NCBI GenBank assembly: GCA_021613535.1
Contig: CP075494.1
Location: 4,526,001 to 4,590,000 of the forward strand
Length of the DNA stretch: 64,000 nucleotides
Source of the DNA: Adineta vaga
Taxonomy: Eukaryota; Animalia; Rotifera
Direction: 5' to 3'
Made by a program: the position numbers and the translations under genes
The notes under the pieces: model-generated
Told to the model about the DNA's origin: nothing
Seen by the model: the letters and a program-made list of their open reading frames with translations, nothing else
Database searches by the model: none
Shown: positions 115 to 51,194 of the stretch, piece by piece
How the letters are laid out: every line of letters begins with the position of its first letter
How positions within the stretch are numbered: the stretch's first letter is position 1

Positions 115-1725
115 TTATAGCAGGACTTTATCTTGATGTATGATTCCATATTTTTGTCTTAATTGATGTAATAATGTATGATTATATGAACAGGTAAGAT
201 TTTTTTGATTGTCAATAATACCTCCAATTTTCCATTGTCGATATTCATGAACAAGTTCTTCAATCCAAAAGTTAAAACAAAAAAATTTCGTTCGTTCCGA
301 TCTGATTGTTACTGATGAACAAAATTCTTTATCTTTTTCACACATTTCAATAAATAACTGTCCATCTTTCGCTAAATTTTCATATGGATTCACTGGTATT
401 CGAAATCCTTGAAGAATAAGTTGACCTGCTTGTCGAACTAACCTTACGATTTCATCTTTTTTAATACCTTTAATTCGTTCATTAATTGGATAATAAAGAC
501 CTTTAATATAAGGTATTCCACTGGTCATATATTGTTCACCATATGAAGTAAATACGTACTTAGTTTTATCCGAACCATCTGGTTTTAATCCTCCAAGATT
601 AATATGAACAGATCCATCGGAGAGAAATGTTTGATACATTTGACCAGTTCCTGGTGCACTAATATGAATATTCATTTGACGTAAGAGACGTAATTGTGCT
701 ATGAATAGATTATCTTGAAATGGCGATTGACTAAAATTTCTCAGTGGAACTTGTTCATAATGAAGATATGAAATATGAATCAATGGCCATTCACGTTGTA
801 AGTTTTGATTTAAATAAAAATTTGTATAATTATTAATTTCTTGAATTGCCTCTTTGATTTCTTGAATATCATCATCAAAAAAACGTTTATTATGAATAAT
901 ATATGCTTGAAGAATCTTATTCAATGATAGTTTTTGTCGAATTAATCCATGTTGTCGATACATTCGCTCACGAAATAATCGTGAACCATCTAATTCCAAA
1001 CCACCAGGTAATTGAAAATTTGATTGTGTACAACGTTGACACATTGTTCCACTTCCCATTATGATTTCATCAAACATAAACCAGCGTCGTAAAGACATTT
1101 CTCTTAACATTGTTTCTTTAATGATCGGAAGACCAGAAAATTGTTGATAAATATCTTCACTCCAACATTTCTCACAATCACGAAAATCTGTAAAAAGTCG
1201 AAACGGTTGAAGATGTCGAGGAGTAAATCGAATTAGTGCAAGATAAGCTGGATAGAGACCATCAAATAATGCATGACCAATATTATATTGCCAATCTTGA
1301 ATAAAATAAACAGTTGGATCAGGAATAATAGTTGGTTCAGCGATCGTTCGAACATAATCTTCTAAAGAACGATAAGAATCAAATTCACGTTCTGCTATTA
1401 CTGTTGACCAAACTTGAAGAGAATTTGTTCGAACGGAATAATTTGGTAGAGATGTTCCTTTGACTTTGAAAATCATAAATCCACTATTGATATAATATAA
1501 ATTTTCAAATAAACAAGATTGATTTATCAATGAACCTACACAACGAATACGTGTTTCAAACGTTTTATTTTTTTCATCAATCGATGTTGATTTAATTTGA
1601 AGTATAACAGATTTGACCATCACTTTCTGTCTTACAATAACGAAGAGAAGAATAAGACTGATAATAATAATTAAGAATTTAACAAATGATTTTATTGATG
1701 ATGCCATCTTTCGTCTAATCAACAT
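115..1725 (-). CDS. GT61-like (DUF563-type) type II membrane glycosyltransferase
   Basis: Intronless 536-aa ORF with an N-terminal TM anchor. NIGHALFD and HISAPGTGQMYQTFLSDGSVHINL resemble GT61 motifs. Clear paralog at 49496-51194. Confidence 0.65.
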   Translation of the reverse strand: MLIRRKMASSIKSFVKFLIIIISLILLFVIVRQKVMVKSVILQIKSTSIDEKNKTFETRIRCVGSLINQSCLFENLYYINSGFMIFKVKGTSLPNYSVRTNSLQVWSTVIAEREFDSYRSLEDYVRTIAEPTIIPDPTVYFIQDWQYNIGHALFDGLYPAYLALIRFTPRHLQPFRLFTDFRDCEKCWSEDIYQQFSGLPIIKETMLREMSLRRWFMFDEIIMGSGTMCQRCTQSNFQLPGGLELDGSRLFRERMYRQHGLIRQKLSLNKILQAYIIHNKRFFDDDIQEIKEAIQEINNYTNFYLNQNLQREWPLIHISYLHYEQVPLRNFSQSPFQDNLFIAQLRLLRQMNIHISAPGTGQMYQTFLSDGSVHINLGGLKPDGSDKTKYVFTSYGEQYMTSGIPYIKGLYYPINERIKGIKKDEIVRLVRQAGQLILQGFRIPVNPYENLAKDGQLFIEMCEKDKEFCSSVTIRSERTKFFCFNFWIEELVHEYRQWKIGGIIDNQKNLTCSYNHTLLHQLRQKYGIIHQDKVLL

Positions 1726-4846: not shown

Positions 4847-6025
4847 ATGACTTCTATTCTCAGTCGTAGACTTTTATCTTATAAAAATATTCGTATTATT
4901 TATGTAATAGTGGTAATCACTATTCTGACAAAAATCATTAGTTTTTGTTCGTATATCGAAAATTTTATTCGTGTATGACTCATATTCTTTTTTCTATATA
5001 GTTCTATCAAAAAACGTGACTTCTTCTTTCCCAGCAAATTCTGAAGAAAATCTTATTTATCATAATAATGGAATTGCATATGATTATTATTCGAAAGATG
5101 AACTTCGAAAAGCACAAATCGGTTATCAATGGAAGATTTGGTCACTTCCACATAATGTCAAATATCATCAGATATCTCCATTTACTCGATCAAAACTTTC
5201 GTATGTTGATATAATTTATATCATGACCAGTTCACGGTTGATTGAACGACAACAACATTTGAAAAAAGTCTTTCATCGACAAGGAATTTCCATGGAATCA
5301 GTCCATTGGAGGATGAAATGGAATCAAACAACATATAATTCTTCTCGTTCCTATGTTTATCAACGACTTAATCTCAAAGATAAACCATTAGGTAGGCTAT
5401 CGAACTCGAACTCATTCACATTCATATAAACTGAACATTCTTAGATCGAAATCAACAACGACGATGTCCAATAACAATGGAACATGTTGATGTTTGGTAT
5501 GAAATAGCGAAGGAAAAGATTCGTCTAGCATTAATTCTCGAAGATGATGTGATATTTGTTCCATTTTTCAAAGAGAAATTTCTTCGCATGATTTCCACAG
5601 CTATTCATGTGGGCGCATTACAATTGAATCGAACATGTGTCGAACGAAGAGAAGGACATATATCAAAGGATGAACGGATCGAACAAAATCCTATGTTTGT
5701 GATTGGTTCATGTTTTCATTTGCATGATGAATATTTTCGACAATCTTCATCCAATGCTTTTCCATTACTATCAACACAAAAAATGAATGCATCTAGATGT
5801 ACACATGCTTATCTCTTGACATCATGTTCAGCTCAAGCACTGGTAGAACAAATTCATAAGCAAAAGAATGACTTTGTTAATTCTGATTTCTTTCAAAATC
5901 ATTTATTTCGATTATCATCAACACTTCAGTCGTTTTGGATAGATCCCCCATTAGCTTATCAAGGAAATCAAATAGTTGATCATGATCAGATCAAAAGTTT
6001 TCAAGGTCAAACACAAAACGAATAA
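4847..6025 (+). CDS. Glycosyltransferase family 25-like protein (3 exons)
   Basis: ALILEDDV and CTHAYLLT motifs with an N-terminal TM. Intron 5392-5444 (GTAGGC...TTAG) joins ORFs 4971-5429 and 5477-6025 in frame. A first intron is probable at 4941-5001. Confidence 0.75.
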
Positions 6026-6048: not shown

Positions 6049-8335
6049 TTATTCAATTTTTTTTACACATACATTGTTTCTATAGTATTGAATTGTCTTT
6101 TGAATTCCTATGGAAAGTGAAGTCATTTGAAACGATGGAAAAATTCTTTTGAATTCCGAAGTATCAGCAGTACGACGTAATGGACCATCTTTATTCATAT
6201 CATTATCGAATTGAATCGATCCATTGTAATTTGCATGATGACATATAAGTTGAACAATATCAGCAACAGAGACTTCTTCACCTGCTACAATTAAAGGTTG
6301 TTGTTCATTATAATTTTCTAATGTCCATAAAACAATTTCAGCAAGATCTTGTGCAAACATAATTTGTCGTAAGGGTTTACCTGTTCCAATCATTTGTAAA
6401 GGAATGGATAAATCTTGTTTCTTTTGATTTTCTATTTTTGCAATCAATGCATTTACAAGTGGCGCTGTATTTGGATTGAAATCTCCATAAGCACCAAAGA
6501 AATTCCCTGGTAAAATCGTAACAAAATTACATTGATATTCTTTTCGATACCATTCTGTAAGTTGTGCTAATGATCGTTTAGCATATGCATAGGATTCCGA
6601 TGCTGGATGAGGTAATCCATCGTAAATGGAAGACGTATCGATTGGGAATTGTGCATTTTTTGGAAGCATAACTGTTGATAAGATAGAAACTAATTTTATT
6701 TGACCAATCCATGTTTGAAATTCGAATGTTGTTTGAAGAATATTATTATTTATTGTAACATTATTAATCCAAAATTCCACTGGTTTAGCGGACATTTCTT
6801 GAATGGATGCAAGATGTGCGGCACAATGAATAACACGTGTTGGTTGAAAACGTTTGAAAATCTTTTCAACATCTTTAACTTTTCGAAGATCTCCATCTTG
6901 ACGAGTAATAAAAATCCATTCGGAATCATTTGTTTTAAGCTTTAATGGTTTGGAATCGATTATTACTGATGAATCTGATTGACCTAAGAGAACATCACGA
7001 ATATATTGACCTAACATTCCATTACTTCCTGTAATTAATGTAAAATGATATGGTGAAAATGGAAATGCTAAGATGATCTCTACAAGTTTATCAATAATGG
7101 TTTGATCAAGAGACATTTGATGAACACCAATGAAAAATCCACGTGAATGAATAACTTCTGCACCTGGATAATTTTCCGGATGTTCTTCATCACAAAATAT
7201 TGATATGCAAGGTTGACGAATAAAATTTCCGCTGATAATCGGACGATTCTCAATTCCATTTTTTTCAAGATATTTTAAAAATTCGAAACGTTGATGTGTA
7301 TAACATCGATGTAATAAAAATCCTAAACCAAACCATGCTGGATCTACATCTTCCGAAGGTTCAATCAATGACATTAATGATGAAAATCTTTCATAACGTG
7401 CAAATGTTTCTTTTATAAGACGAAAATTTTCTCGACGATTCTTATTAAATTGATAAAGTTTATCTAATTGAACATTTAACATTGCACCTTGAACTTCTAA
7501 TGGTCGAAGATTATAACCCATATTTATAAATAAAAATCGACAATCAATATCGGGATACAATTCTTCAACTTGTTGACGATTCGTTATGTGTCTAGTCCAC
7601 CCATGGGCCCGTAGACAACGAAGAAAATTATAATCTTCTTCTGTATGACATGTTATCATTCCTCCTTCACCACTTGTAATATGATGTGAAAAATAGAATG
7701 AAAATGTTCCAAAATCTCCAAATGTTCCTAACATTTTCTGTTGACAGAAACTTCCTAATGATTCGCATGTATCTTCAATTAAAATAAGTTGATGTTCTTG
7801 AACAAATTTCATTAATAATTTCATATTAATCGAATTTCCAAGAACATGAACAGCCATAACTGCTTTCACACGATTGGTTAATTTACGTTCAAGTTCATGA
7901 AGAGATATATTGAAAGTACGTGGATCAACATCGACAAAGATTGGACGAAGACCATTTTGAATTAATGGAAATACACTAGTTGACCAACAAACCGCTGGAA
8001 CAAGAACATGATCACCTGGATCACAATGTTTTGGACGTAATTTATTTGCTATTGCTGAAACGCAATAAATTAGCTGAACTACCCGAATTAACCATGACAG
8101 CATAGGATACACCAAGAATTTGTGCAAATTTCTTTTCAACATGTTCAATTTCTTTACCTAAAGTTAATCGACCAGATAATAAAACTTCAGTCATTGCTAA
8201 AATTTCTTCTTCACCAAATGGATTCATTGCTAATGGAAATAAAGTTGATGTATCTTGTTTTTCCGCTGAACGACGAGCATTCCATTCCTTTGCGATAATC
8301 ACTTTCCATATTGGTTTGTTCGTTTCACTATTCAT
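6049..8335 (-). CDS. Fusion: ColD-like PLP-dependent GDP-4-keto-6-deoxymannose 3-dehydratase + GDP-fucose-synthase-like SDR reductase (one frameshift at ~8062)
   Basis: N-domain has DegT-family motifs NSGSSANLL, EDTCESLG, FSFYFSHHITSGEGG (His in place of the Schiff-base Lys) and LRAHGWTR. C-domain has LITGSNGMLG, YAYAK and GTGKPLRQ. ORFs 8042-8353 and 6049-8148 overlap and switch frame at NLL/VSA. Confidence 0.85.
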
Positions 8336-8578: not shown

Positions 8579-10927
8579 ATGTGCTATCAAAATTTCTTCC
8601 GTTTTAATAAAAGATCTTGGCAAGAATCGAAAGCAATGATTTCATTGATAATCTATTGTCTATCTGGTACATTTCTGACTTTATTTAATAAACTTACAAT
8701 CATTCGTTTTCCCTATACAAATATTCTTTTAATTTTACAAAACACTTTCGCTGTTATTCTATTAATATTCTGTTCTCAATGTTTTCGTTCAACATTTGGA
8801 TCTCTACCACGATTAAATCGAATGGTTTTTCAAGTTTGGTTACCATTAGTTATCTTGTTTGTTCTCATGTTAATATCAAGTTTAATTGCATTAATCTATG
8901 TTAGTGTACCAACAGTTATTGTCATGAGAAATTTAACAACTTTATTTGTTTCACTTCTTGAATATTTGTTTCTAAAACATAAAACAACACGTTTTTCTCT
9001 TGTGATATTAATTGGCATGTTATGTGCTGCAATACTCTATGCAAAACATGATTTTACATTTAATATTCGCGGTTATATTTGGTTAGGTGTGAATATTCTT
9101 AGTACAAGTATTTATCAGATTTATATTAAGAAAATTATTCATTTGGTTTATTTTGAAAATATTGGATCGATTGGAATGTCGTATTATAATAATTTATTAT
9201 CTTTACCTTTACTTTGGATAATTGCATGTGGAACAGGAGAATTCAAGAGATTAATCATGGATTCTAATTATGAAATGATTTCGATTCTTTTAATAATTAT
9301 TTCAAGTATTCTTGGCTTTTTATTAAGTATATCGGCATTTACTTTAAACAAATTAATATCTGCAACTTCAATGATGGTTGCTAATAATGTGAACAAATTC
9401 TCTGTTATTCTCCTCAGCGAACTATTTATTAAATCAACTCTTGATCTAGTTGCTTCTATTGGTGCAATATCCGTTCTTTGTCTTGGATGGTTATATTCTC
9501 AAACAACAAAATCAACATTAAAAACAATCTGTCTTATCATTACTATTCTTTTGATGATCTTAGGTGCAATTATTGAATACAAATATACTAAAACTACCGA
9601 AGATTATTATAGTCAATTTCAACCGATTATTTTCAATAAAACAATATTACGCCGATCTCTAAATACTCAGCAAGGAAATGAAATTTATCAATCATATCTT
9701 CCCATATCCAAGAAATCCTATCATATATCTCATCCTAAAATTGATATACGACATGTTCAAAACTATTCTCTTCCACAAAATTGTCGAAATCGAAATGCAT
9801 CGATATGGAAAACATGTGATATTCGTTCTTGTCAACCTTATACTCGTCTACCGAAATGGAATTATCCCCAACAAACAATTTTGCAAGAAAAAACTGATGA
9901 ATTTATTCATCATCTATTAGAAATAGCTTGGGGTAGAAATCCACCTTGGATTGATTTATATTTACGTAGTAGTTGTAATGGTATTATGGAAATGCAATAT
10001 CTTCTTGAAAGTATCAAACTTTTTTGGCCAAGATTTTTAGGTTCTATTATCATTGTTCTTGATGTAAATGATGAGAAAATTTTAAAATATATCTTACCGA
10101 ATCAACCAACACATCATTATATCATTAGTTTTGAACATACACCTTGTTTACCTGGACGAATTTTTAATCAATATAGTTATTTAAATCTTGATCGACATTC
10201 ACATGCTGATTATATTTTAACAGTTGACAGTGATTGTATATTTCATTCACCAGTGACACCGGATTTAATTTTTCGTGATGGAAAAATTATTTTATCGTCA
10301 TCACAAACATTTCAACGAGATCTCTGGTTAAAACCATTGGAAGCTATTATGGGCCTGGGAATGTATGAACGACATTATATGGTAACACAACCAGTGACTT
10401 TTGCTCGATCAACCTTTTCATCATTTCGAAAATGGTTTTGTCAAACGAAAGGACAATGTTATGAAGATCAGCTTACACAATTATTACCAAAATATTATCA
10501 AGAATTTTGTTGGATGTGTCAACTTGGTACTTATTTAGAACGAGGACATGTAGAGAAAAGTGAATATGATACATATTGGTATCAACATTTAGATGATCCA
10601 TCATTAAAACCAATATTACGATATGCAATTCATATTCCATATGAACCATTTAATACAACACAATGTCGAGAGGTATTATGTTATGAGAAAACAGCAAATG
10701 AAATTATTAAGCAAGGATTATGTCGAGCATTTGGTCCATCAATATTTCAATTTTGTATGAATTATAAACATTTTAATTATATAAATAATGTCACATTTTC
10801 TTATGCCCAATTCGAAATTCAAGCAGCAGAAAAATCTGAACGAATCAATGTATTAAATGATTATTTAAAACGTTTAGCAAATGTAACAATGATGGCTTAT
10901 GATTTTAAGAATGTAGGACAATGTTAG
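8579..10927 (+). CDS. Fusion: SLC35/GONST-like GDP-sugar transporter + GT-A-fold glycosyltransferase-like domain
   Basis: ~10 TM segments with RNLTT, SYYNNLLSLP (cf. Vrg4 FYNN) and SATSMMVANNVNK (cf. GALNK/GVVNK). An extra TM follows, then a soluble Cys-rich domain with a DXD motif (YILTVDSDCIF). Intronless. Confidence 0.8.
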   Translation: MCYQNFFRFNKRSWQESKAMISLIIYCLSGTFLTLFNKLTIIRFPYTNILLILQNTFAVILLIFCSQCFRSTFGSLPRLNRMVFQVWLPLVILFVLMLISSLIALIYVSVPTVIVMRNLTTLFVSLLEYLFLKHKTTRFSLVILIGMLCAAILYAKHDFTFNIRGYIWLGVNILSTSIYQIYIKKIIHLVYFENIGSIGMSYYNNLLSLPLLWIIACGTGEFKRLIMDSNYEMISILLIIISSILGFLLSISAFTLNKLISATSMMVANNVNKFSVILLSELFIKSTLDLVASIGAISVLCLGWLYSQTTKSTLKTICLIITILLMILGAIIEYKYTKTTEDYYSQFQPIIFNKTILRRSLNTQQGNEIYQSYLPISKKSYHISHPKIDIRHVQNYSLPQNCRNRNASIWKTCDIRSCQPYTRLPKWNYPQQTILQEKTDEFIHHLLEIAWGRNPPWIDLYLRSSCNGIMEMQYLLESIKLFWPRFLGSIIIVLDVNDEKILKYILPNQPTHHYIISFEHTPCLPGRIFNQYSYLNLDRHSHADYILTVDSDCIFHSPVTPDLIFRDGKIILSSSQTFQRDLWLKPLEAIMGLGMYERHYMVTQPVTFARSTFSSFRKWFCQTKGQCYEDQLTQLLPKYYQEFCWMCQLGTYLERGHVEKSEYDTYWYQHLDDPSLKPILRYAIHIPYEPFNTTQCREVLCYEKTANEIIKQGLCRAFGPSIFQFCMNYKHFNYINNVTFSYAQFEIQAAEKSERINVLNDYLKRLANVTMMAYDFKNVGQC

Positions 10928-12671: not shown

Positions 12672-13057
12672 CATATAGAAAATGAAGAAGGATGGTTCAG
12701 ACATGAGTTATTATTGATTCTGATGTTAGATCAAATACATATAACTAAAAATATGTGTATAATTCTAATCACACAGATATTAAGTAAGAATGACAATAAT
12801 TTCAATTTACAGTTTATTTCGATAAATCATAAAATTATTCAAATTTTCACTAACAACCATGGAGAAATCATTTGAGTTCGTACAATCTATGAAACGAGGA
12901 TGATCATGCAAGATCGAAGAGTCGAAACGAAAAACAAAAAGAAAACAACGTTACCATCAGTAGCTCTCTACTTTTCTTATCACATTAACACTGTAGAAAT
13001 AATTGATAAGAAAAGTTGACATACTTTGCAATCATTACATTTCGTCGTTATACATCG

Positions 13058-14650
13058 ATGATGTCGAAGTATTTTTCATTTTTTATTTTCATTTCTCTTC
13101 TATTTGTATCATCTTCATCGGATTCGATTTTATCAGAAAAAGAATTGAAATTAATTCGCTATCTATCCTATTTAACACATCTTCAAACAACATCAACAAC
13201 CAATATTACTTGGAATGGTTGGGAAAAAAATTACGATGGTCCTCAACTTGGTTTAGATTCGATTCGATATCCTCTCGCTCATATCGGTTACACCGCTGCA
13301 GCTTTAGCATATCGAACGCCGAACTATCGTGAATTAGCTTTAAATATTTTAAATGATACCATAAAACGTATGTTAACTATACAAGTATGGGGATATATCG
13401 ATCAATATTGGAAGAAAACATCGACATTTCCAGATCCTGTTTATTATGAAAATATTATGTATAGTGGACATCTTTTACAATTAATAACATTATATGAAAG
13501 TATTTCTGGAGATTTTATCTATGATACACAAGGCTTTGATTTCATTTGGAATAAAGATGGACAATCTGTAACTAAAATTCATTATACAACAACACAACTT
13601 GCTTATGTTATTTATCGTCAAATGAATGAAGAATCTTCAGCAGGTGTTTCATGTGAACCAGGATGGGTCTATACAATTTGTCAAAATCATCCACATCTTG
13701 GTTTAAAACTCTATGATATCGTTCGTAATAGTACTACAACATTTTCACAAATATCATCAAAATGGAAAGATTTTCTCAATCATCATGCACTCGAAGATAT
13801 TCCATTGTATAAAAAAGATCGATATTTTAAAATGTTATATCAACGTTCTACTCATATTTGGGTACCATTTTTTGCTGCGACAGGTAATGATGGATGGGCA
13901 TTAGCGTGGATGTCATCTTGGTACGATCAAAATCAAACATCAAATTTTATCTGCAATGGATGGGAAGTAATGTATAAGAATAAATATTGGATAGTGTCGA
14001 AAAATCATAGTTTATCCAGTTGTTACCTCGAAGCGGGTGGTTATATTGGTGTTCGAATGCAAATGAATCGTTGGATAGCAACATCATTTTATCCCATTGT
14101 TGAAAAGCAATGTTCAACAACGAAGACAGAAAAATTAACATGTGCTTATTCATGGTTTGAAAATGATTTCGGATTGTTAGTAGATACAGATCATGATGGA
14201 TATTTCGAATCGTTTTACTATGAAACCAATACAGTTTATTCGAATTGGGTTACCACAAATGTTTTATTGTCATTGTTAATGGGAGAGAACGGAGATGAGA
14301 CAAGAGAATTTTTAAGAAAAATTTATACAACAAAATTTCATGAAAAATTTCTTAATGATGAACCAGAAATTTTAGCTGTTCAATATCCATCAGTACGTGT
14401 TACACGGGCACAATATGATTCGAACACAAAACTATTAATTCTTAATTTCAACACAGAGAAACCAATGATTTTATCAACACAATTCGATTTAAGATATCCA
14501 TATTCATTTTTAACTATTTCAAATATGACACGTGATGGTACACGTGATGGATTTACATCAAAACAGATAGCCAACAATAGAATAAGAATTGAATATTCTT
14601 ATAATACTTTGGAAAGACAAAATACAGAATTTCATATATTATTTCATTAA
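13058..14650 (+). CDS. Linalool dehydratase/isomerase-like secreted protein
   Basis: Signal peptide. IRYPLAHIGY, ENIMYSGHLLQLITLYE and SCEPGWVYTICQNH match the LinD family, including both Cys of the CEP...C motif. Intronless. Confidence 0.75.
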   Translation: MMSKYFSFFIFISLLFVSSSSDSILSEKELKLIRYLSYLTHLQTTSTTNITWNGWEKNYDGPQLGLDSIRYPLAHIGYTAAALAYRTPNYRELALNILNDTIKRMLTIQVWGYIDQYWKKTSTFPDPVYYENIMYSGHLLQLITLYESISGDFIYDTQGFDFIWNKDGQSVTKIHYTTTQLAYVIYRQMNEESSAGVSCEPGWVYTICQNHPHLGLKLYDIVRNSTTTFSQISSKWKDFLNHHALEDIPLYKKDRYFKMLYQRSTHIWVPFFAATGNDGWALAWMSSWYDQNQTSNFICNGWEVMYKNKYWIVSKNHSLSSCYLEAGGYIGVRMQMNRWIATSFYPIVEKQCSTTKTEKLTCAYSWFENDFGLLVDTDHDGYFESFYYETNTVYSNWVTTNVLLSLLMGENGDETREFLRKIYTTKFHEKFLNDEPEILAVQYPSVRVTRAQYDSNTKLLILNFNTEKPMILSTQFDLRYPYSFLTISNMTRDGTRDGFTSKQIANNRIRIEYSYNTLERQNTEFHILFH

Positions 14651-24495: not shown

Positions 24496-25986
24496 TTAGC
24501 ACATGGAATCTTTTTTTTCATTTATATCGTCATTAATCTTCGTCCATTCAAATCCTAATAATTGTAATCCAATGATGGTACCATCACTCAATGATTCAAA
24601 CTTGATGGAAAAACCATTTTCCTTGACAAAAAAATCCATATCAGATTCTGGATACAGAAGATATTCTTGTCTACTCGAAAGTTGGTTAGCGCGTAATTGA
24701 TTACTTTCAACGGTAATCAGTAAAGTAGCGTTTTCTTGAGCCAAGAAATATGTTCCAGCAAATCTGGCTAATTTTGAGAGTGACAATGTCACTATAGTTT
24801 TCGTTATTGGTTTATGAAAATCCCATTCGTAAGTAATGGCAATACTTCGGACGAGTTCCGTAATTAAATTCATTCCATCATCTGAATTAGTCATAATTAC
24901 TGCACCTTTACCTGAATATGCAGTACCAAATAAGAAAGATCGAAATCCTTCATTAGCACCAGTATGACCAAAAGCTAAAGAGTCTTGATCACCATAAACA
25001 GTAGGACCTAAACCCCAATCGCCTAAGTGTTTCGTCAACATCTGTTCAGTCATATCTTGTGAAAGAATTTGATTCGATTGATTTTGTAGAGATTTTTGTA
25101 TTTCAATTATATAAAGAGCTAAATCAGATGGTGTAGTCCATAGTCCAGCGGCTGCACTTTCTGGATATATGTACCAATTGTCAGGTATTTTTTCACCACG
25201 TAATCGATGACCGATGCTTGCTCGTAGTTGCCATGATCGAGGTAATGTCTGTTCAAAAGTACTATGCTTCATACCAATGGGAGAAAGTATAGAACGTTGC
25301 ATTAATGAAGAAAAACTCCATGCAGTCACATCTTCTAATAATTGTTGTAAGAGAACATATCCACCACCTGAATATCGCCAAAGAGTTCCTGGAATCTGAT
25401 CAGAAATAATAGGCCGTGAATTTGCTGGTTTTTCTCCGTTGAGTATTTGAATAAGTGTAGGTATTGTTTCATTGTGAGTATAACCGGGAAAGCCATGCAC
25501 AGTAAGACCAGCTGTATGTGTAAGAAGCCCTCGTAATGTAATCGGTTTGTTTTCTGTGAAAGATGTATTTTTTACTTTCCATGAACGAAGATATGTATTG
25601 ACATTTTCATCTAGATCAAGTCTATCTTGTTCTACCAAACGGAGAGCCGCCATTGCGGACACTGTTTTGCTAATAGAAGCTGCTTGAAATAATGTTAATG
25701 TATTGGCTTTCTTCACATGGTTCACATCGAGATGACCGTAAGCTTTTGTCCATTCGATGACTCCGTCATTTATTATAGCTATACTAACAGCAGGTACATG
25801 ATAATGTTTCATTCGTTCGTGAATTGTAAATGTTGAAGACAATTCACCTTCAATTTCAATCGCGTAACGTAATCCATTTTCCACTTCTTTTATTTTTGAA
25901 ATTGTATTATCATCAGTTAATATAGTTTGTAAGAAGCACAGCTGCCAGAATAATGTAATCACAAGCAAAATCGCTTTATGTCGCAT
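24496..25986 (-). CDS. Serine hydrolase, class C beta-lactamase/PBP family with C-terminal DUF3471-like domain
   Basis: Signal peptide; FQAASISK (SxxK), LLTHTAG, YSG and HTG motifs; intronless. Confidence 0.9.
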   Translation of the reverse strand: MRHKAILLVITLFWQLCFLQTILTDDNTISKIKEVENGLRYAIEIEGELSSTFTIHERMKHYHVPAVSIAIINDGVIEWTKAYGHLDVNHVKKANTLTLFQAASISKTVSAMAALRLVEQDRLDLDENVNTYLRSWKVKNTSFTENKPITLRGLLTHTAGLTVHGFPGYTHNETIPTLIQILNGEKPANSRPIISDQIPGTLWRYSGGGYVLLQQLLEDVTAWSFSSLMQRSILSPIGMKHSTFEQTLPRSWQLRASIGHRLRGEKIPDNWYIYPESAAAGLWTTPSDLALYIIEIQKSLQNQSNQILSQDMTEQMLTKHLGDWGLGPTVYGDQDSLAFGHTGANEGFRSFLFGTAYSGKGAVIMTNSDDGMNLITELVRSIAITYEWDFHKPITKTIVTLSLSKLARFAGTYFLAQENATLLITVESNQLRANQLSSRQEYLLYPESDMDFFVKENGFSIKFESLSDGTIIGLQLLGFEWTKINDDINEKKDSMC

Positions 25987-26951: not shown

Positions 26952-27710
26952 ATGTCTTGTATGCAAAAACGTGACGATCATTGGACCTATGATGATCCAT
27001 GTGAATGGTCAAAGTATTTCTCATCTGCTGCTGGATTATGCCAATCACCAATCGACATCAAAACAAACGAACTTATCATTCACTCCTATCCACCATTTGT
27101 ATTTTCCCATAGATACAATTCGAATGAAATATTCAAATTAGTTAACAATGGACATCAAGTTGCAGCGACATTATCTGATCATACCTATGGACAAAGTGGC
27201 AGAGATCTATGGTTTACAGGTGGTGGTATCGAAGGAAAATTTTATTTTCTCAATTTTCATCTACATTGGGGACGAAATGATCGTCATGGTTCAGAACATG
27301 AAATTAATGGACGACGTTATCCAGCCGAAGCACATATTGTTTTCAAAAATCATGAAACTAGTCAAATCGCTGTTTTTGCATTTCTCTTCACGGTTACAGA
27401 TCGTTGGTATGAAGAAAATCTTGAATGGGAAAAATATTGTGATGCTGCCAGTCAATTAATCAATATCAATGACACAATTCAATGTATGTTTAATCTTAGT
27501 CAACTGATGCGAGCAAATGAACGGCAATTCTTTCGTTATATCGGAAGTTTAACAACACCACCATGTACAGAAGGGGTAATATGGACAATATTTACAGATA
27601 CAATTCCGATAAAAGAAGAAAGTTTGAATCAACTTCGTCAAAATCTGATGAGAAAAGTGTATCGACCGGTGCAGCCATTAAATAATCGAACAGTTCTTAT
27701 ATGTAACTGA
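26952..27710 (+). CDS. Alpha-carbonic anhydrase (copy 1)
   Basis: QSPIDI, FHLHWG, GSEH, EAHIV and GSLTTPPCTEGV motifs; three Zn-binding His intact. Confidence 0.95.
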   Translation: MSCMQKRDDHWTYDDPCEWSKYFSSAAGLCQSPIDIKTNELIIHSYPPFVFSHRYNSNEIFKLVNNGHQVAATLSDHTYGQSGRDLWFTGGGIEGKFYFLNFHLHWGRNDRHGSEHEINGRRYPAEAHIVFKNHETSQIAVFAFLFTVTDRWYEENLEWEKYCDAASQLININDTIQCMFNLSQLMRANERQFFRYIGSLTTPPCTEGVIWTIFTDTIPIKEESLNQLRQNLMRKVYRPVQPLNNRTVLICN

Positions 27711-28090: not shown

Positions 28091-28852
28091 ATGTCTTGTA
28101 TGACACACGATCATGATGATTGTTGGGACTATGATAATCCTTCAGAGTGGCAAAAATATTTTCCATTAGCCGCTGAGTTTTACCAATCGCCAATTCATAT
28201 CAATTCACAACAAACGATTCTTTATTCTTACCCTACACTTGTATTTTCCACTAAATATTATCCGAATGAACTATTCAAATTAGTTAACAATGGACATCAA
28301 GTTGTTGCGACATTAGCTGATCGTACGTACGGGCAAAGTGATAAAGATTTATGGTTTCATGGAAGTGGATTGATCGGTCGATTTTATTTTGTTAATTTTC
28401 ATTTACATTGGAGTCAAGATGATCAACATGGATCAGAACATGAAATCGATGGTCGTCAATTTCCAGCCGAAGCACATGTTGTTTTCAAAAATCATGAAAC
28501 TGGTCAAATCGCTGTTTTTGCATTTCTCTTCACTGTCACCAATCACTTGCAAAAAGGAAATAAAGAATGGGAAAAATACTGTGATGCTGCCAGTCAATTA
28601 ATCAATATCAATGATACAATTCAATGTATGTTTAATCTTAATCATCTTATGGAAACAAATGAACGACAATTCTTCCGTTATGCGGGAAGTTTAACAACAC
28701 CACCATGTACAGAAGGGGTGATATGGACAATATTTACAGATACAATTTCGATAAAAGAAGACAGTTTAAAACAACTTCGTCAGAAGGTAATGAGAAAAGT
28801 CTATCGACCGATACAACCATTAAACGATCGAACAGTTTTTCGTAATGATTAA
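28091..28852 (+). CDS. Alpha-carbonic anhydrase (copy 2, tandem)
   Basis: Same motifs as copy 1; tandem paralog. Confidence 0.95.
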   Translation: MSCMTHDHDDCWDYDNPSEWQKYFPLAAEFYQSPIHINSQQTILYSYPTLVFSTKYYPNELFKLVNNGHQVVATLADRTYGQSDKDLWFHGSGLIGRFYFVNFHLHWSQDDQHGSEHEIDGRQFPAEAHVVFKNHETGQIAVFAFLFTVTNHLQKGNKEWEKYCDAASQLININDTIQCMFNLNHLMETNERQFFRYAGSLTTPPCTEGVIWTIFTDTISIKEDSLKQLRQKVMRKVYRPIQPLNDRTVFRND

Positions 28853-41809: not shown

Positions 41810-42568
41810 TTAATCACTAACGAAAACCGTTCGATTATTTAATGGTTGCACCGGTCGATACACTTTTCTCATCAAATTTTGACGAAGTTGATTCAAACTT
41901 TCTTCTTTTATCGGAATTGTATCTGTAAATATTGTCCATATTACCCCTTCTGTACATGGTGGTGTTGTTAAACTTCCGATATAACGAAAGAATTGCCGTT
42001 CATTTGCTCGCATCAGTTGACTAAGATTGAACATACATTGAATTGTATCATTGATGTTGATTAATTGACTGGCAGCATCACAATATTTTTCCCATTCAAG
42101 ATTTTCTTCATACCAACGATCTGTAACAGTGAAGAGAAATGCAAAAACAGCGATTTGACCAGTTCCATGATTTTTGAAAACAATATGCGCTTCAGCTGGA
42201 TAACGTCGTCCATTAATTTCATGTTCTGAACCATGACGATCATTTCGTCCCCAATGTAGATGAAAATTGAGAAAATAAAATTTTCCTTCGATACCACCAC
42301 CTGTAAACCATAGATCTCTGCCACTTTGTCCATAGGTATGATCAGCTAATGTCGCTGCAACTTGATGTCCATTGTTAACTAATTTGAATAGTTCATTCGA
42401 ATTATATCTTTGAGAGAATTCAAATGGTGGATAGGAGTGAATAATAAGTTCGTTTGTTCTGATGTCGATTGGTGATTGAGATAGTCCAGCAGCAGATGGG
42501 AAATACTTTGACCATTCACATGGATCATCATAACTCCAAAGATCATCAGATTTTTCAATACAAGACAT
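41810..42568 (-). CDS. Alpha-carbonic anhydrase (copy 3, inverted)
   Basis: Nearly identical to copy 1 except at the termini; all motifs intact. Confidence 0.95.
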   Translation of the reverse strand: MSCIEKSDDLWSYDDPCEWSKYFPSAAGLSQSPIDIRTNELIIHSYPPFEFSQRYNSNELFKLVNNGHQVAATLADHTYGQSGRDLWFTGGGIEGKFYFLNFHLHWGRNDRHGSEHEINGRRYPAEAHIVFKNHGTGQIAVFAFLFTVTDRWYEENLEWEKYCDAASQLININDTIQCMFNLSQLMRANERQFFRYIGSLTTPPCTEGVIWTIFTDTIPIKEESLNQLRQNLMRKVYRPVQPLNNRTVFVSD

Positions 42569-49495: not shown

Positions 49496-51194
49496 ATGCT
49501 ATATTCACAGAGAAAATTGAAAAGAATTGGTTTAATTATATTTTTTCTTCTTACTCTTATTGTTTTACATCAAATTTTAAGTTTATATACAATTTTTTCA
49601 TCGAATCGCAACGATCATCAACAACGAAAGAATTATTCTGTATTACACAGTTCATCAACAAATCGATCATTAATAACAACAGTGAAATGTATTGGTCCTC
49701 TCTACAATCAATCATGTCTTTATAAAAATCTTTATTATACTAAACAAGGATTTTTAGCTTTATCCTTAAAAGAAGATAATTTAACATTACCAGGTGTTCG
49801 ATTAGGAGCATTAGCTACAACTGATTTTCGTCCACATCATCGAATATTTGATACATATGAAGAACTTTATCGATTTGTTCGTTTAATCAATGAACCACGC
49901 ATATTTTCAGGACTTACAATTCATTTTAATCAACTTTGGCATGGAAACGTTGGTCATGCACTATTTGATGGACTTTATCCTTCTTATATCGCCGCAATTC
50001 GTTTTGCTCCAATACATCCAACCATTTCGTCTTCTTATTGGTTTCGATAAAAGTCAATGTCGAAATTGTTTCAGTGAAGATATTTTTAGTCGTTTTGCTG
50101 GACTTGGTTTAATTAAATCGAATATTCTCGATTCACTTGTTGCGAATCAATGGTTTGTTTTCGAAGAAGTTCTTCTCGGCAGTGGAATGATGTGTCAACG
50201 TTGTATTCAATCAAATTATCAATTAGCTGGTGGAATTGAACTTGACGGTTCTCGATTATTTCGTAATCGAATGTATAAACAACATGGACTTTATTCTTCT
50301 CATGTTCGTCAAAATCATTCAGCAGAAAAACGTCATTTCAAACAACCATTGAATGCATATATTATTCATAATAAACGTTTTACAGTCGAAGAACAAGAAG
50401 AACTTCGTCTTGCAATGAATGAAATCAATGATTATACAAATTCACATTTAAATAAAACTATTAATGACATTAAGACATTACCATATCCACTTGTACGAGT
50501 TATTTATCTTGATTATCGTAATATTACACCTCAAAATAATATATCCAGTGATTTTAAAGCAACTGAAATGGATTCAAGATCTCCAATGTATGAATTATTA
50601 GATAATAATTTTATTGCACAATTACGTGTTGTACGTCAGATGGATATTCATATAACAGGACCAGGTACAGGACAAATGTATCAAACCTTTCTTTCAGATG
50701 GATCAGTAAATATTAATCTTGGAGGAATGAATCCATATAAAAAAGAAACAACACCGATTGCTTATCCATCATTTCTCGAACAATATGTTACAGCAGGAAT
50801 ACCGTATATTAAAGGTCTTTATTATCCAATTAATAAAAGACGTGATGGAATCAAACGAAATGAAGTTGTTCAATTAATTAAACAAGCAGCACAAATGATT
50901 ATGAAAGGATTTTCTATACCAGTTAATCCAAAAGAAAATCTTGCGCCTGATGGTCAAGTCTTTGTTGATCAATGTGAACATGATAAAGATTTTTGTCAAT
51001 TAGTTACGATTAGAAAAAGTGGTCAATTCTGGTGCAACAATATGTGGACAGAAGATCTGGTACATGAACGTCGACAATGGGCTGAAGGAGGATTTCCTAT
51101 CAATGGTGCAAATGTTAATTGTTCATTCAATCGAACATTATTACGTAGTTTGAGGCAGAAATATGGAATTGAATATCGTTCTGGCCGAGAATAA
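49496..51194 (+). CDS. GT61-like glycosyltransferase, paralog of 115-1725 (frameshift at ~50017)
   Basis: ORFs 49496-50050 and 49890-51194 together align end-to-end with the 536-aa paralog. The frame switches at RFAPIH/QPFRL. Confidence 0.65.

Follow-up and report, generated by a model that had tools for sequence, protein, structure and literature searches.

A rotifer fusion of a ColD-type 3-dehydratase and a GDP-fucose synthase-like reductase without epimerase residues: a candidate source of GDP-D-tyvelose

The fusion gene and its surroundings

The stretch of DNA analyzed here (the window) comprises 64,000 nucleotides from the bdelloid rotifer Adineta vaga (GCA_021613535.1, CP075494.1:4,526,001-4,590,000), and searches of the A. 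vaga genome covered 100.8 Mb in 6 contigs. At positions 6049 to 8335, on the minus strand, lies a single-exon gene that fuses a ColD-type 3-dehydratase to a C4 reductase resembling GDP-L-fucose synthase (FX). Its product, I4U23_023207 in NCBI (P0001 among the homologues), is 762 amino acids long when an assembly error is allowed for, and full-length homologues have 730 to 830 amino acids. The N-terminal part (7066 to 8335, minus strand) is a DegT-family PLP domain (Pfam PF01041), and the C-terminal part (6049 to 7050, minus strand) is an epimerase-family SDR domain. The PLP domain was assigned to the ColD type from the Pfam match, the PDB match, and a survey of motifs. Its best PDB match was ColD, at 228 bits versus 175 bits for E1, and the [2Fe-2S] cysteine motif of the E1/SpnQ type was absent from the sequence after HGW. 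When the domain was aligned with ColD and with a ColD variant that has Asn at the same position, a catalytic His equivalent to ColD His188 fell at 7684 to 7686 (minus strand), where an aminotransferase has Lys. With His at this position, no Fe-S cysteines, and a closer match to ColD, both an aminotransferase (perosamine synthase) and an E1 enzyme were ruled out.

In the assembly, the reading frame is broken near 8060, and the 752-amino-acid NCBI model omits ten conserved residues there. Contigs of runs X1 and X4, each from a different, independent DNA study, have one base more than the assembly after 8061 and again after 8065, indicating that two single bases are missing from the assembly (8061 to 8065, minus strand). 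When both were restored, the gene was intronless, encoded 762 amino acids, and was in a frame that fits the conserved motif of its orthologues. Because the contigs of both studies carry the extra bases and the frame fits the orthologues, the apparent frameshift was attributed to an assembly error, and the reading of the gene as a pseudogene was ruled out. At 8099, at 8107, and at several other sites of the window, both DNA runs also disagree with the assembly, which suggests that the assembly has more local errors around the frameshift. The amino acid changes that result from the listed allelic differences are conservative. When A. vaga, A. ricciae, and Rotaria socialis were compared, dN/dS was 0.09 to 0.19 for the reductase domain and about 0.06 for the ColD domain, with synonymous sites near saturation. 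The reductase domain is thus under purifying selection. As to expression, two short contigs match the gene, from runs only guessed to be RNA.

Head-to-head with the fusion gene is a gene for a Vrg4-like nucleotide-sugar transporter of the TPT family (PF03151), itself fused to an uncharacterized C-terminal domain (8579 to 10927, plus strand). The only PDB matches of this transporter were GDP-mannose transporters, and it is 46% identical to the transporter found head-to-head beside a homologue on the eukaryote-like contig L006. A second transporter gene, 45% identical to this neighbor and with a similarly long frame of 796 codons, was seen elsewhere in the genome (L039, G000:C3:19145794-19146693). 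On the other flank, a convergent neighbor consists of two ORFs, probably exons (4971 to 6025, plus strand), with a glycosyltransferase family 25 domain (PF01755; E = 9e-10 on 5477 to 6025), and by its position alone it may belong to the pathway. Farther out, the window holds two paralogous membrane-anchored proteins (115 to 1725, minus strand, and 49496 to 51194, plus strand) that are 53% identical and have no Pfam match. A 23-residue stretch of these paralogues weakly resembles the gene adjoining the fusion in L006 (E = 0.004), and they are possible glycosyltransferases. Also present are an intronless linalool dehydratase/isomerase-like gene that is likely foreign (13016 to 14650, plus strand; PF18566, E = 4e-41), an intronless ORF of likely bacterial origin for an apparent serine hydrolase of the beta-lactamase/penicillin-binding fold, recognized by eye from SxxK (24496 to 25986, minus strand), and three similar alpha-carbonic-anhydrase-like ORFs (26952 to 27710 and 28091 to 28852, plus strand; 41810 to 42568, minus strand), the first and third of which are nearly identical and inverted.

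The active site of the reductase domain

Sequence matches and an AlphaFold model (pLDDT 96) both identified the C-terminal domain as FX-like; the top structural match of the model was human FX (4BL5; rmsd 1.7, TM 0.87). Among solved structures, GDP-L-fucose synthases of the eukaryote type come closest to it (Naegleria, E = 5e-54; human, E = 1.5e-52). A first-pass annotation of this DNA had compared the domain with E. coli Fcl and had reported that both epimerase residues are replaced while the reductase residues are intact. The substitutions were right, but the closest relatives are of the eukaryotic FX type (E = 1e-52 to 1e-54) and not Fcl (E = 1e-22). Against NCBIfam NF047922, a model built for prokaryotic proteins, the domain scored 152 bits versus a cutoff of 500.

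In the alignment with human GDP-L-fucose synthase, which is gapless at both sites, LSTCIFP stands opposite LSTVMLP and EDGHVLPGLI opposite NTAPLVNALI. The epimerase base, Cys116 in the human enzyme and Cys109 in E. coli, is thereby replaced by Val (codon at 6670 to 6672, minus strand), and the epimerase acid, His186 or His179, by Pro (6460 to 6462), within a segment at 6451 to 6462 (minus strand) that continues with a family-conserved Asn in place of Pro189; the clade described below mostly has Asn in this column. These are the same two codons that the earlier annotation had singled out, and neither shows a variant among the 40 differences listed, 6 weaker ones aside, for the contigs of the two independent DNA studies. 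At the position of the catalytic His acid, Lys is tolerated. The remaining catalytic machinery is preserved, as had been claimed. On the minus strand, the alignment located an intact Rossmann GxxGxxG motif (7009 to 7035), the catalytic Ser of the SDR triad (6676 to 6678; 99% in the clade), and the YxxxK motif (6577 to 6591, with Tyr at 6589 to 6591 and Lys at 6577 to 6579), and the Ser/Tyr/Lys triad as a whole is conserved in 99 to 100% of the clade.

The changes extend well into the sugar pocket. In the structure of human FX, Asn79 and Asn140 are sugar-pocket residues, and Lys194, Arg215, and Lys282 contact GDP (PMC12362431). By comparison of alignment columns, the substrate loop of the rotifer domain (6793 to 6813, minus strand) is remodeled from VGG to LAS, with Met in place of Asn79, and Ser replaces Asn140 (6598 to 6600, minus strand). 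At the Asn79 column, 95% of the clade has Met and 97% of canonical enzymes have Asn; at the Asn140 column, 85% of the clade has Ser, Ala, or Gly and 93% of canonical enzymes have Asn. The basic GDP contacts (Lys194, Arg215, and Lys/Arg282) are kept in the clade, and the Lys that contacts guanine O6 is Lys or Arg in 100% of it; the guanine-stacking Phe77 and Trp208 are replaced, although both are variable in canonical enzymes too. A column-wise sequence search of the sugar pocket for a substitute acid or base found no gained His, Cys, Lys, or acidic residue; the sole candidates were the change of Lys282 to Arg and an Asp at query position 301, the latter also common in canonical enzymes. The pocket looks remodeled and more hydrophobic, as would suit a 3-deoxy sugar.

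Loss of the two residues does not by itself create a reductase, since the human C116A and H186A mutants are inactive (<0.01%) and were not turned into reductases; therefore, the argument for a reductase-only enzyme needs the remodeling of the pocket. The dead human mutants, the frameshift in the assembly, and some bdelloid-like paralogues that also lack YxxxK might instead speak for a noncatalytic or decaying appendage, or for a pseudogene in this strain. Such decay is very unlikely in light of the contigs of two studies without the frameshift, the near-invariant triad across the clade, and dN/dS well below 1. The native human pocket does not reduce the 3-hydroxy manno ketone; the missing 3-OH and the pocket changes may permit C4 reduction without epimerization.

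Distribution and genomic context of the family

A search with the reductase region retrieved 62 proteins, most of which represent the same fusion at full length. Cys or His was found at the two epimerase columns in 0 of the 62 fused homologues, and further protist members likewise lack both. A strain-specific or sequencing substitution was ruled out by this absence and by the lack of any variant in the contigs. Among close sequences with an intact YxxxK motif, Val is present in 58 of 66 and Pro in 64 of 66. The conservation of both substitutions in orthologues, which the first-pass annotation had proposed to check, is therefore borne out, and protists, which it had proposed to search, do share the architecture. 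Named members come from Adineta, Rotaria, the dinoflagellates Yihiella and sp. MGD, Chromera velia, and the amoebozoan Phalansterium, and other members sit on giant-virus contigs. Its further suggestion of a link to Trichinella found no support. No match among those listed is named as a nematode protein in protein searches limited by word and by length, in which most matches are unnamed and one of which gave the best 120 of 616; this is a lack of support and not evidence of absence. The feature is genuine; it is conserved, is under selection, and marks an uncharacterized eukaryotic and viral family.

In a FastTree phylogeny of 193 domains, with a midpoint root only, the Val/Pro family forms one clade of 78 rows (SH 98), and the named bdelloid sequences form a subclade within a background of protist, viral, and unnamed sequences. 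This placement fits a horizontal acquisition of the fusion gene, for which no donor is claimed. Throughout the clade, the reductase is fused to a His-type ColD or encoded head-to-head with one. A few unrelated lineages independently lack one or both epimerase residues. No bacterial member of the clade was found in a one-pattern scan of 185,579 genomes, a weak test, and no plasmid member was found in another weak test, where the best match was about 30% identical. A viral scan gave no match with a single protein as the query and one locus with a profile.

Bacterial genes provided the contrast. Of 54 Fcl-like genes that lie beside bacterial ColD, 51 keep both Cys and His and the other 3 keep His alone, so that His is present in 54 of 54. 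Therefore, colitose-type synthases, needing only C5 inversion, retain the pair. The A. vaga genome also contains a separate, intron-containing canonical FX with both residues (C6; exons checked motif by motif), and fucose synthesis is therefore independent of the fusion gene. One giant-virus contig similarly bears a canonical FX as well as a ColD fusion without Cys and His.

Several related arrangements were observed alongside the family. ColD-FX fusions with intact Cys and His occur in both domain orders (P0114 at L034, P0119, P0129, and P0131), at least one of them on a giant-virus-like contig, and are candidate one-protein GDP-L-colitose synthases outside bacteria. Among bdelloid-like paralogues (P0021, P0043, P0052, P0057, P0058, P0275, P0277 to P0283, and L042:5710-8016), the named ones of which are from Adineta steineri, the ColD domain is intact and strongly conserved and the reductase is missing YxxxK or the Arg that binds GDP. 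Such proteins resemble a live dehydratase with a pseudo-reductase attached, and at L042 a transporter is still head-to-head with the fusion. Other ColD-linked FX homologues (L131, L133, and L134; P0166; P0100; L088, L096, and L097) have Asn/Arg at the epimerase positions in viral loci, Gly/His in a fusion, or Ala/His in three actinobacteria, and the epimerase site has been rewired several times independently among them. Many viral contigs in IMG/VR (L149 to L209) carry ColD beside a gene for GDP-mannose 4,6-dehydratase (GMD), with no Fcl-like partner detected within about 5 kb, and Pelagibacter ColD-like proteins (L053 to L070) have SHQ for SHH after the catalytic His, with no Fcl-like neighbor detected.

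The genomic context bears on the nucleotide to which the sugar is attached. At L048, an unfused cluster contains ColD, a Val/Pro reductase, two GMD genes, two transporters, and a GT10 gene, and the A. vaga genome has three intron-containing GMD-like loci. The presence of GMD in the unfused cluster and the Vrg4-like transporter adjoining the fusion suggest a GDP-mannose-derived pathway feeding the secretory route, and the GDP linkage that had been proposed from the sequence is probable from context. The A. vaga genome also has a divergent, intronless pair resembling rmlA and rmlB (L011, G000:C3:3657070-3661014), for which no rmlC was detected, and other sugar SDRs. These genes and the lost guanine-stacking aromatics would be compatible with a different substrate, such as a UDP, CDP, or dTDP sugar, a heptose, or a 3-hydroxy ketosugar reduced directly to GDP-D-rhamnose or 6-deoxy-D-talose uncoupled from ColD. 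We regard this as quite unlikely given the constant association with a His-type ColD across the clade, GMD adjoining the reductase in L048, a transporter most like GDP-mannose transporters, and the invariably basic residue at guanine O6.

Predicted product and comparison with known systems

In the proposed scheme, the rotifer obtained by horizontal transfer one enzyme with two activities, which together lead to a GDP-3,6-dideoxyhexose. Judging from genome content, rotifer GMD would first convert GDP-mannose to GDP-4-keto-6-deoxy-D-mannose. The 4,6-dehydratase exchanges H5 by itself (PMC10440746), so the D2O test at C5 suggested in the first-pass annotation would require a control. The ColD domain, going by its homology and catalytic His, would then remove the 3-OH using PMP and glutamate, and the C-terminal domain would reduce C4 with NADPH, presumably leaving C5 uninverted, since it has neither epimerase residue nor a replacement for either. 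The adjoining transporter would carry the GDP-sugar into the secretory pathway for glycan decoration. Four products are possible from GDP-4-keto-3,6-dideoxy-D-mannose, namely, D-arabino (tyvelose) and D-lyxo without C5 inversion and L-xylo (colitose) and L-ribo with it. The earlier proposal of a reductase-only domain is well supported at the level of sequence, with loss of both residues family-wide, the contrast with 51 of 54 bacterial enzymes, no substitute residue, and no RmlC-type epimerase found. Hence, a reductase-only enzyme with a D-configured GDP-3,6-dideoxyhexose as its predicted product is the likely reading.

An L-sugar (L-colitose or L-ribo) could still arise if the fusion reduced an intermediate inverted at C5, whether through a stand-alone epimerase, through the canonical FX of the host working on the 3-deoxy ketone, or through unrecognized residues. 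In Campylobacter HS:5 and HS:11, the work is indeed split among a 3-dehydratase, a separate C5-epimerase, and a reductase (PMC10440746). Moreover, canonical GFS reduces epimerized substrate only, and a canonical FX is present in A. vaga. An L-sugar nevertheless appears unlikely. No RmlC-type cupin was found in the A. vaga genome by an exon-wise search, which can miss genes, or in the gene calls of those eukaryotic or viral loci that were inspected; the pocket gains no ionizable residue; and the ColD fusions with intact Cys and His would give L-colitose in one step.

Within the D series, the outcome depends on the face of hydride delivery. The human C116S mutant released mostly the D-altrose product, with a D-configured C5 and a manno-type C4. 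This product shows the hydride face of FX on an un-inverted sugar, so tyvelose would be expected from the fusion; delivery to the same face would yield GDP-alpha-D-tyvelose (3,6-dideoxy-D-arabino-hexose), the C5 epimer of L-colitose. The opposite face would give GDP-3,6-dideoxy-D-lyxo-hexose (3,6-dideoxy-D-talose), which is equally in accord with the loss of epimerization (0 of 62 homologues, the bacterial contrast, and the pocket columns). From the same substrate, the GFS-family reductase of Campylobacter HS:3 makes the D-lyxo heptose and that of HS:53 the D-arabino 3,6-dideoxy-heptose (PMC10440746). In these heptose analogues, the anomeric signal lies at about 5.25 to 5.4 ppm for alpha-D products and at about 4.87 ppm for beta-L ones. 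As the rotifer pocket is extensively altered and HS:3 gives D-lyxo, the C4 face may differ from that of FX. The D-lyxo sugar is a minor possibility, because the domain descends from eukaryote-type FX, whose C116S variant gives the manno-type C4 on a D-sugar. Tyvelose is, besides, a known natural glycan sugar, whereas we know of no comparable natural role for the D-lyxo isomer. We put GDP-D-tyvelose as the specific product at roughly even odds, and the odds are about the same for a single polypeptide, shared by bdelloids, protists, and giant viruses, that turns the GDP-fucose precursor straight into GDP-alpha-D-tyvelose.

Tyvelose is known mainly as a bacterial O-antigen sugar and as a Trichinella epitope. 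If the prediction is correct, tyvelose would be made naturally in GDP-linked form with neither a C2 epimerase nor an Fe-S enzyme, an animal would display it, and eukaryotes and their viruses would have a short path through GDP-sugars to 3,6-dideoxy sugars, with an unreported sugar predicted on the glycans of rotifers, dinoflagellates, Chromera, and giant viruses. The fusion would also give simple enzymatic access to tyvelose as an activated donor. Because point mutations merely inactivate the human enzyme, the family is of further value as a natural experiment in which a GDP-fucose synthase became a plain reductase. A search of 8.4 million full texts, among which most subscription papers are missing, gave no match for "GDP-tyvelose", a result short of proof of novelty; two reviews of giant-virus glycosylation mention neither colitose nor a 3-dehydratase. 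Both half-reactions have precedents, and their combination was not found in the literature searched; the Val/Pro fusion would thus be known chemistry in a new form, with a predicted product.

Among known systems, GDP-L-fucose synthase (human FX/GFUS and E. coli Fcl) shares with the rotifer domain the GFS-type fold, the Ser/Tyr/Lys triad, and the GDP contacts Lys194, Arg215, and Lys282. The rotifer domain differs in lacking Cys116, His186, Asn79, Asn140, and the VGG loop and in being fused to ColD, and by its sequence it falls outside the fucose/colitose synthases on both catalytic residues. RMD and GDP-6-deoxy-talose synthase are likewise reductase-only SDRs that act on GDP-4-keto sugars, but they belong to a distant SDR lineage (2PK3, 18% identical and rank 48 among structural matches) and are uncoupled from 3-deoxygenation. 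The CDP-tyvelose pathway of Salmonella and Yersinia (E1 to E3, paratose synthase, and tyvelose 2-epimerase) would reach the same sugar. It is based on CDP-glucose, depends on an Fe-S-containing E1, and ends with a C2 epimerase, whereas in the rotifer the manno configuration at C2 would come from GDP-mannose and the dehydratase is of the ColD type. Tyvelose 2-epimerase was only a distant match to the reductase (E = 1e-6 to 1e-7), which, together with the ColD-type dehydratase, places the fusion outside that pathway.

The GDP-L-colitose pathway of enterobacteria and Vibrio (ColD and ColC) relies on the same kinds of enzyme, in that a His-type PLP 3-dehydratase lacking an Fe-S motif acts first and an NADPH reductase of the GFS fold second. 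The eukaryotic and giant-virus version is instead one polypeptide with neither Cys nor His, whereas 51 of 54 bacterial partners have both, and the Val/Pro family probably lacks C5 inversion. The GDP-heptose C4-reductases of Campylobacter jejuni (HS:53, HS:3, MlghC, and DdahC) also have the GFS fold and are stand-alone C4 reductases, but they act on heptoses, are about 20 to 23% identical to the rotifer domain, and are unfused. The 3,6-dideoxy products of HS:53 and HS:3 were obtained solely in vitro, from mixed enzymes (PMC10440746). Descent from these reductases is not indicated, since eukaryotic FX scored 320 bits versus 136 to 164 bits for the Campylobacter enzymes. Rather, by analogy, the rotifer fusion is predicted to work like ColD combined with a Campylobacter-type C4 reductase.
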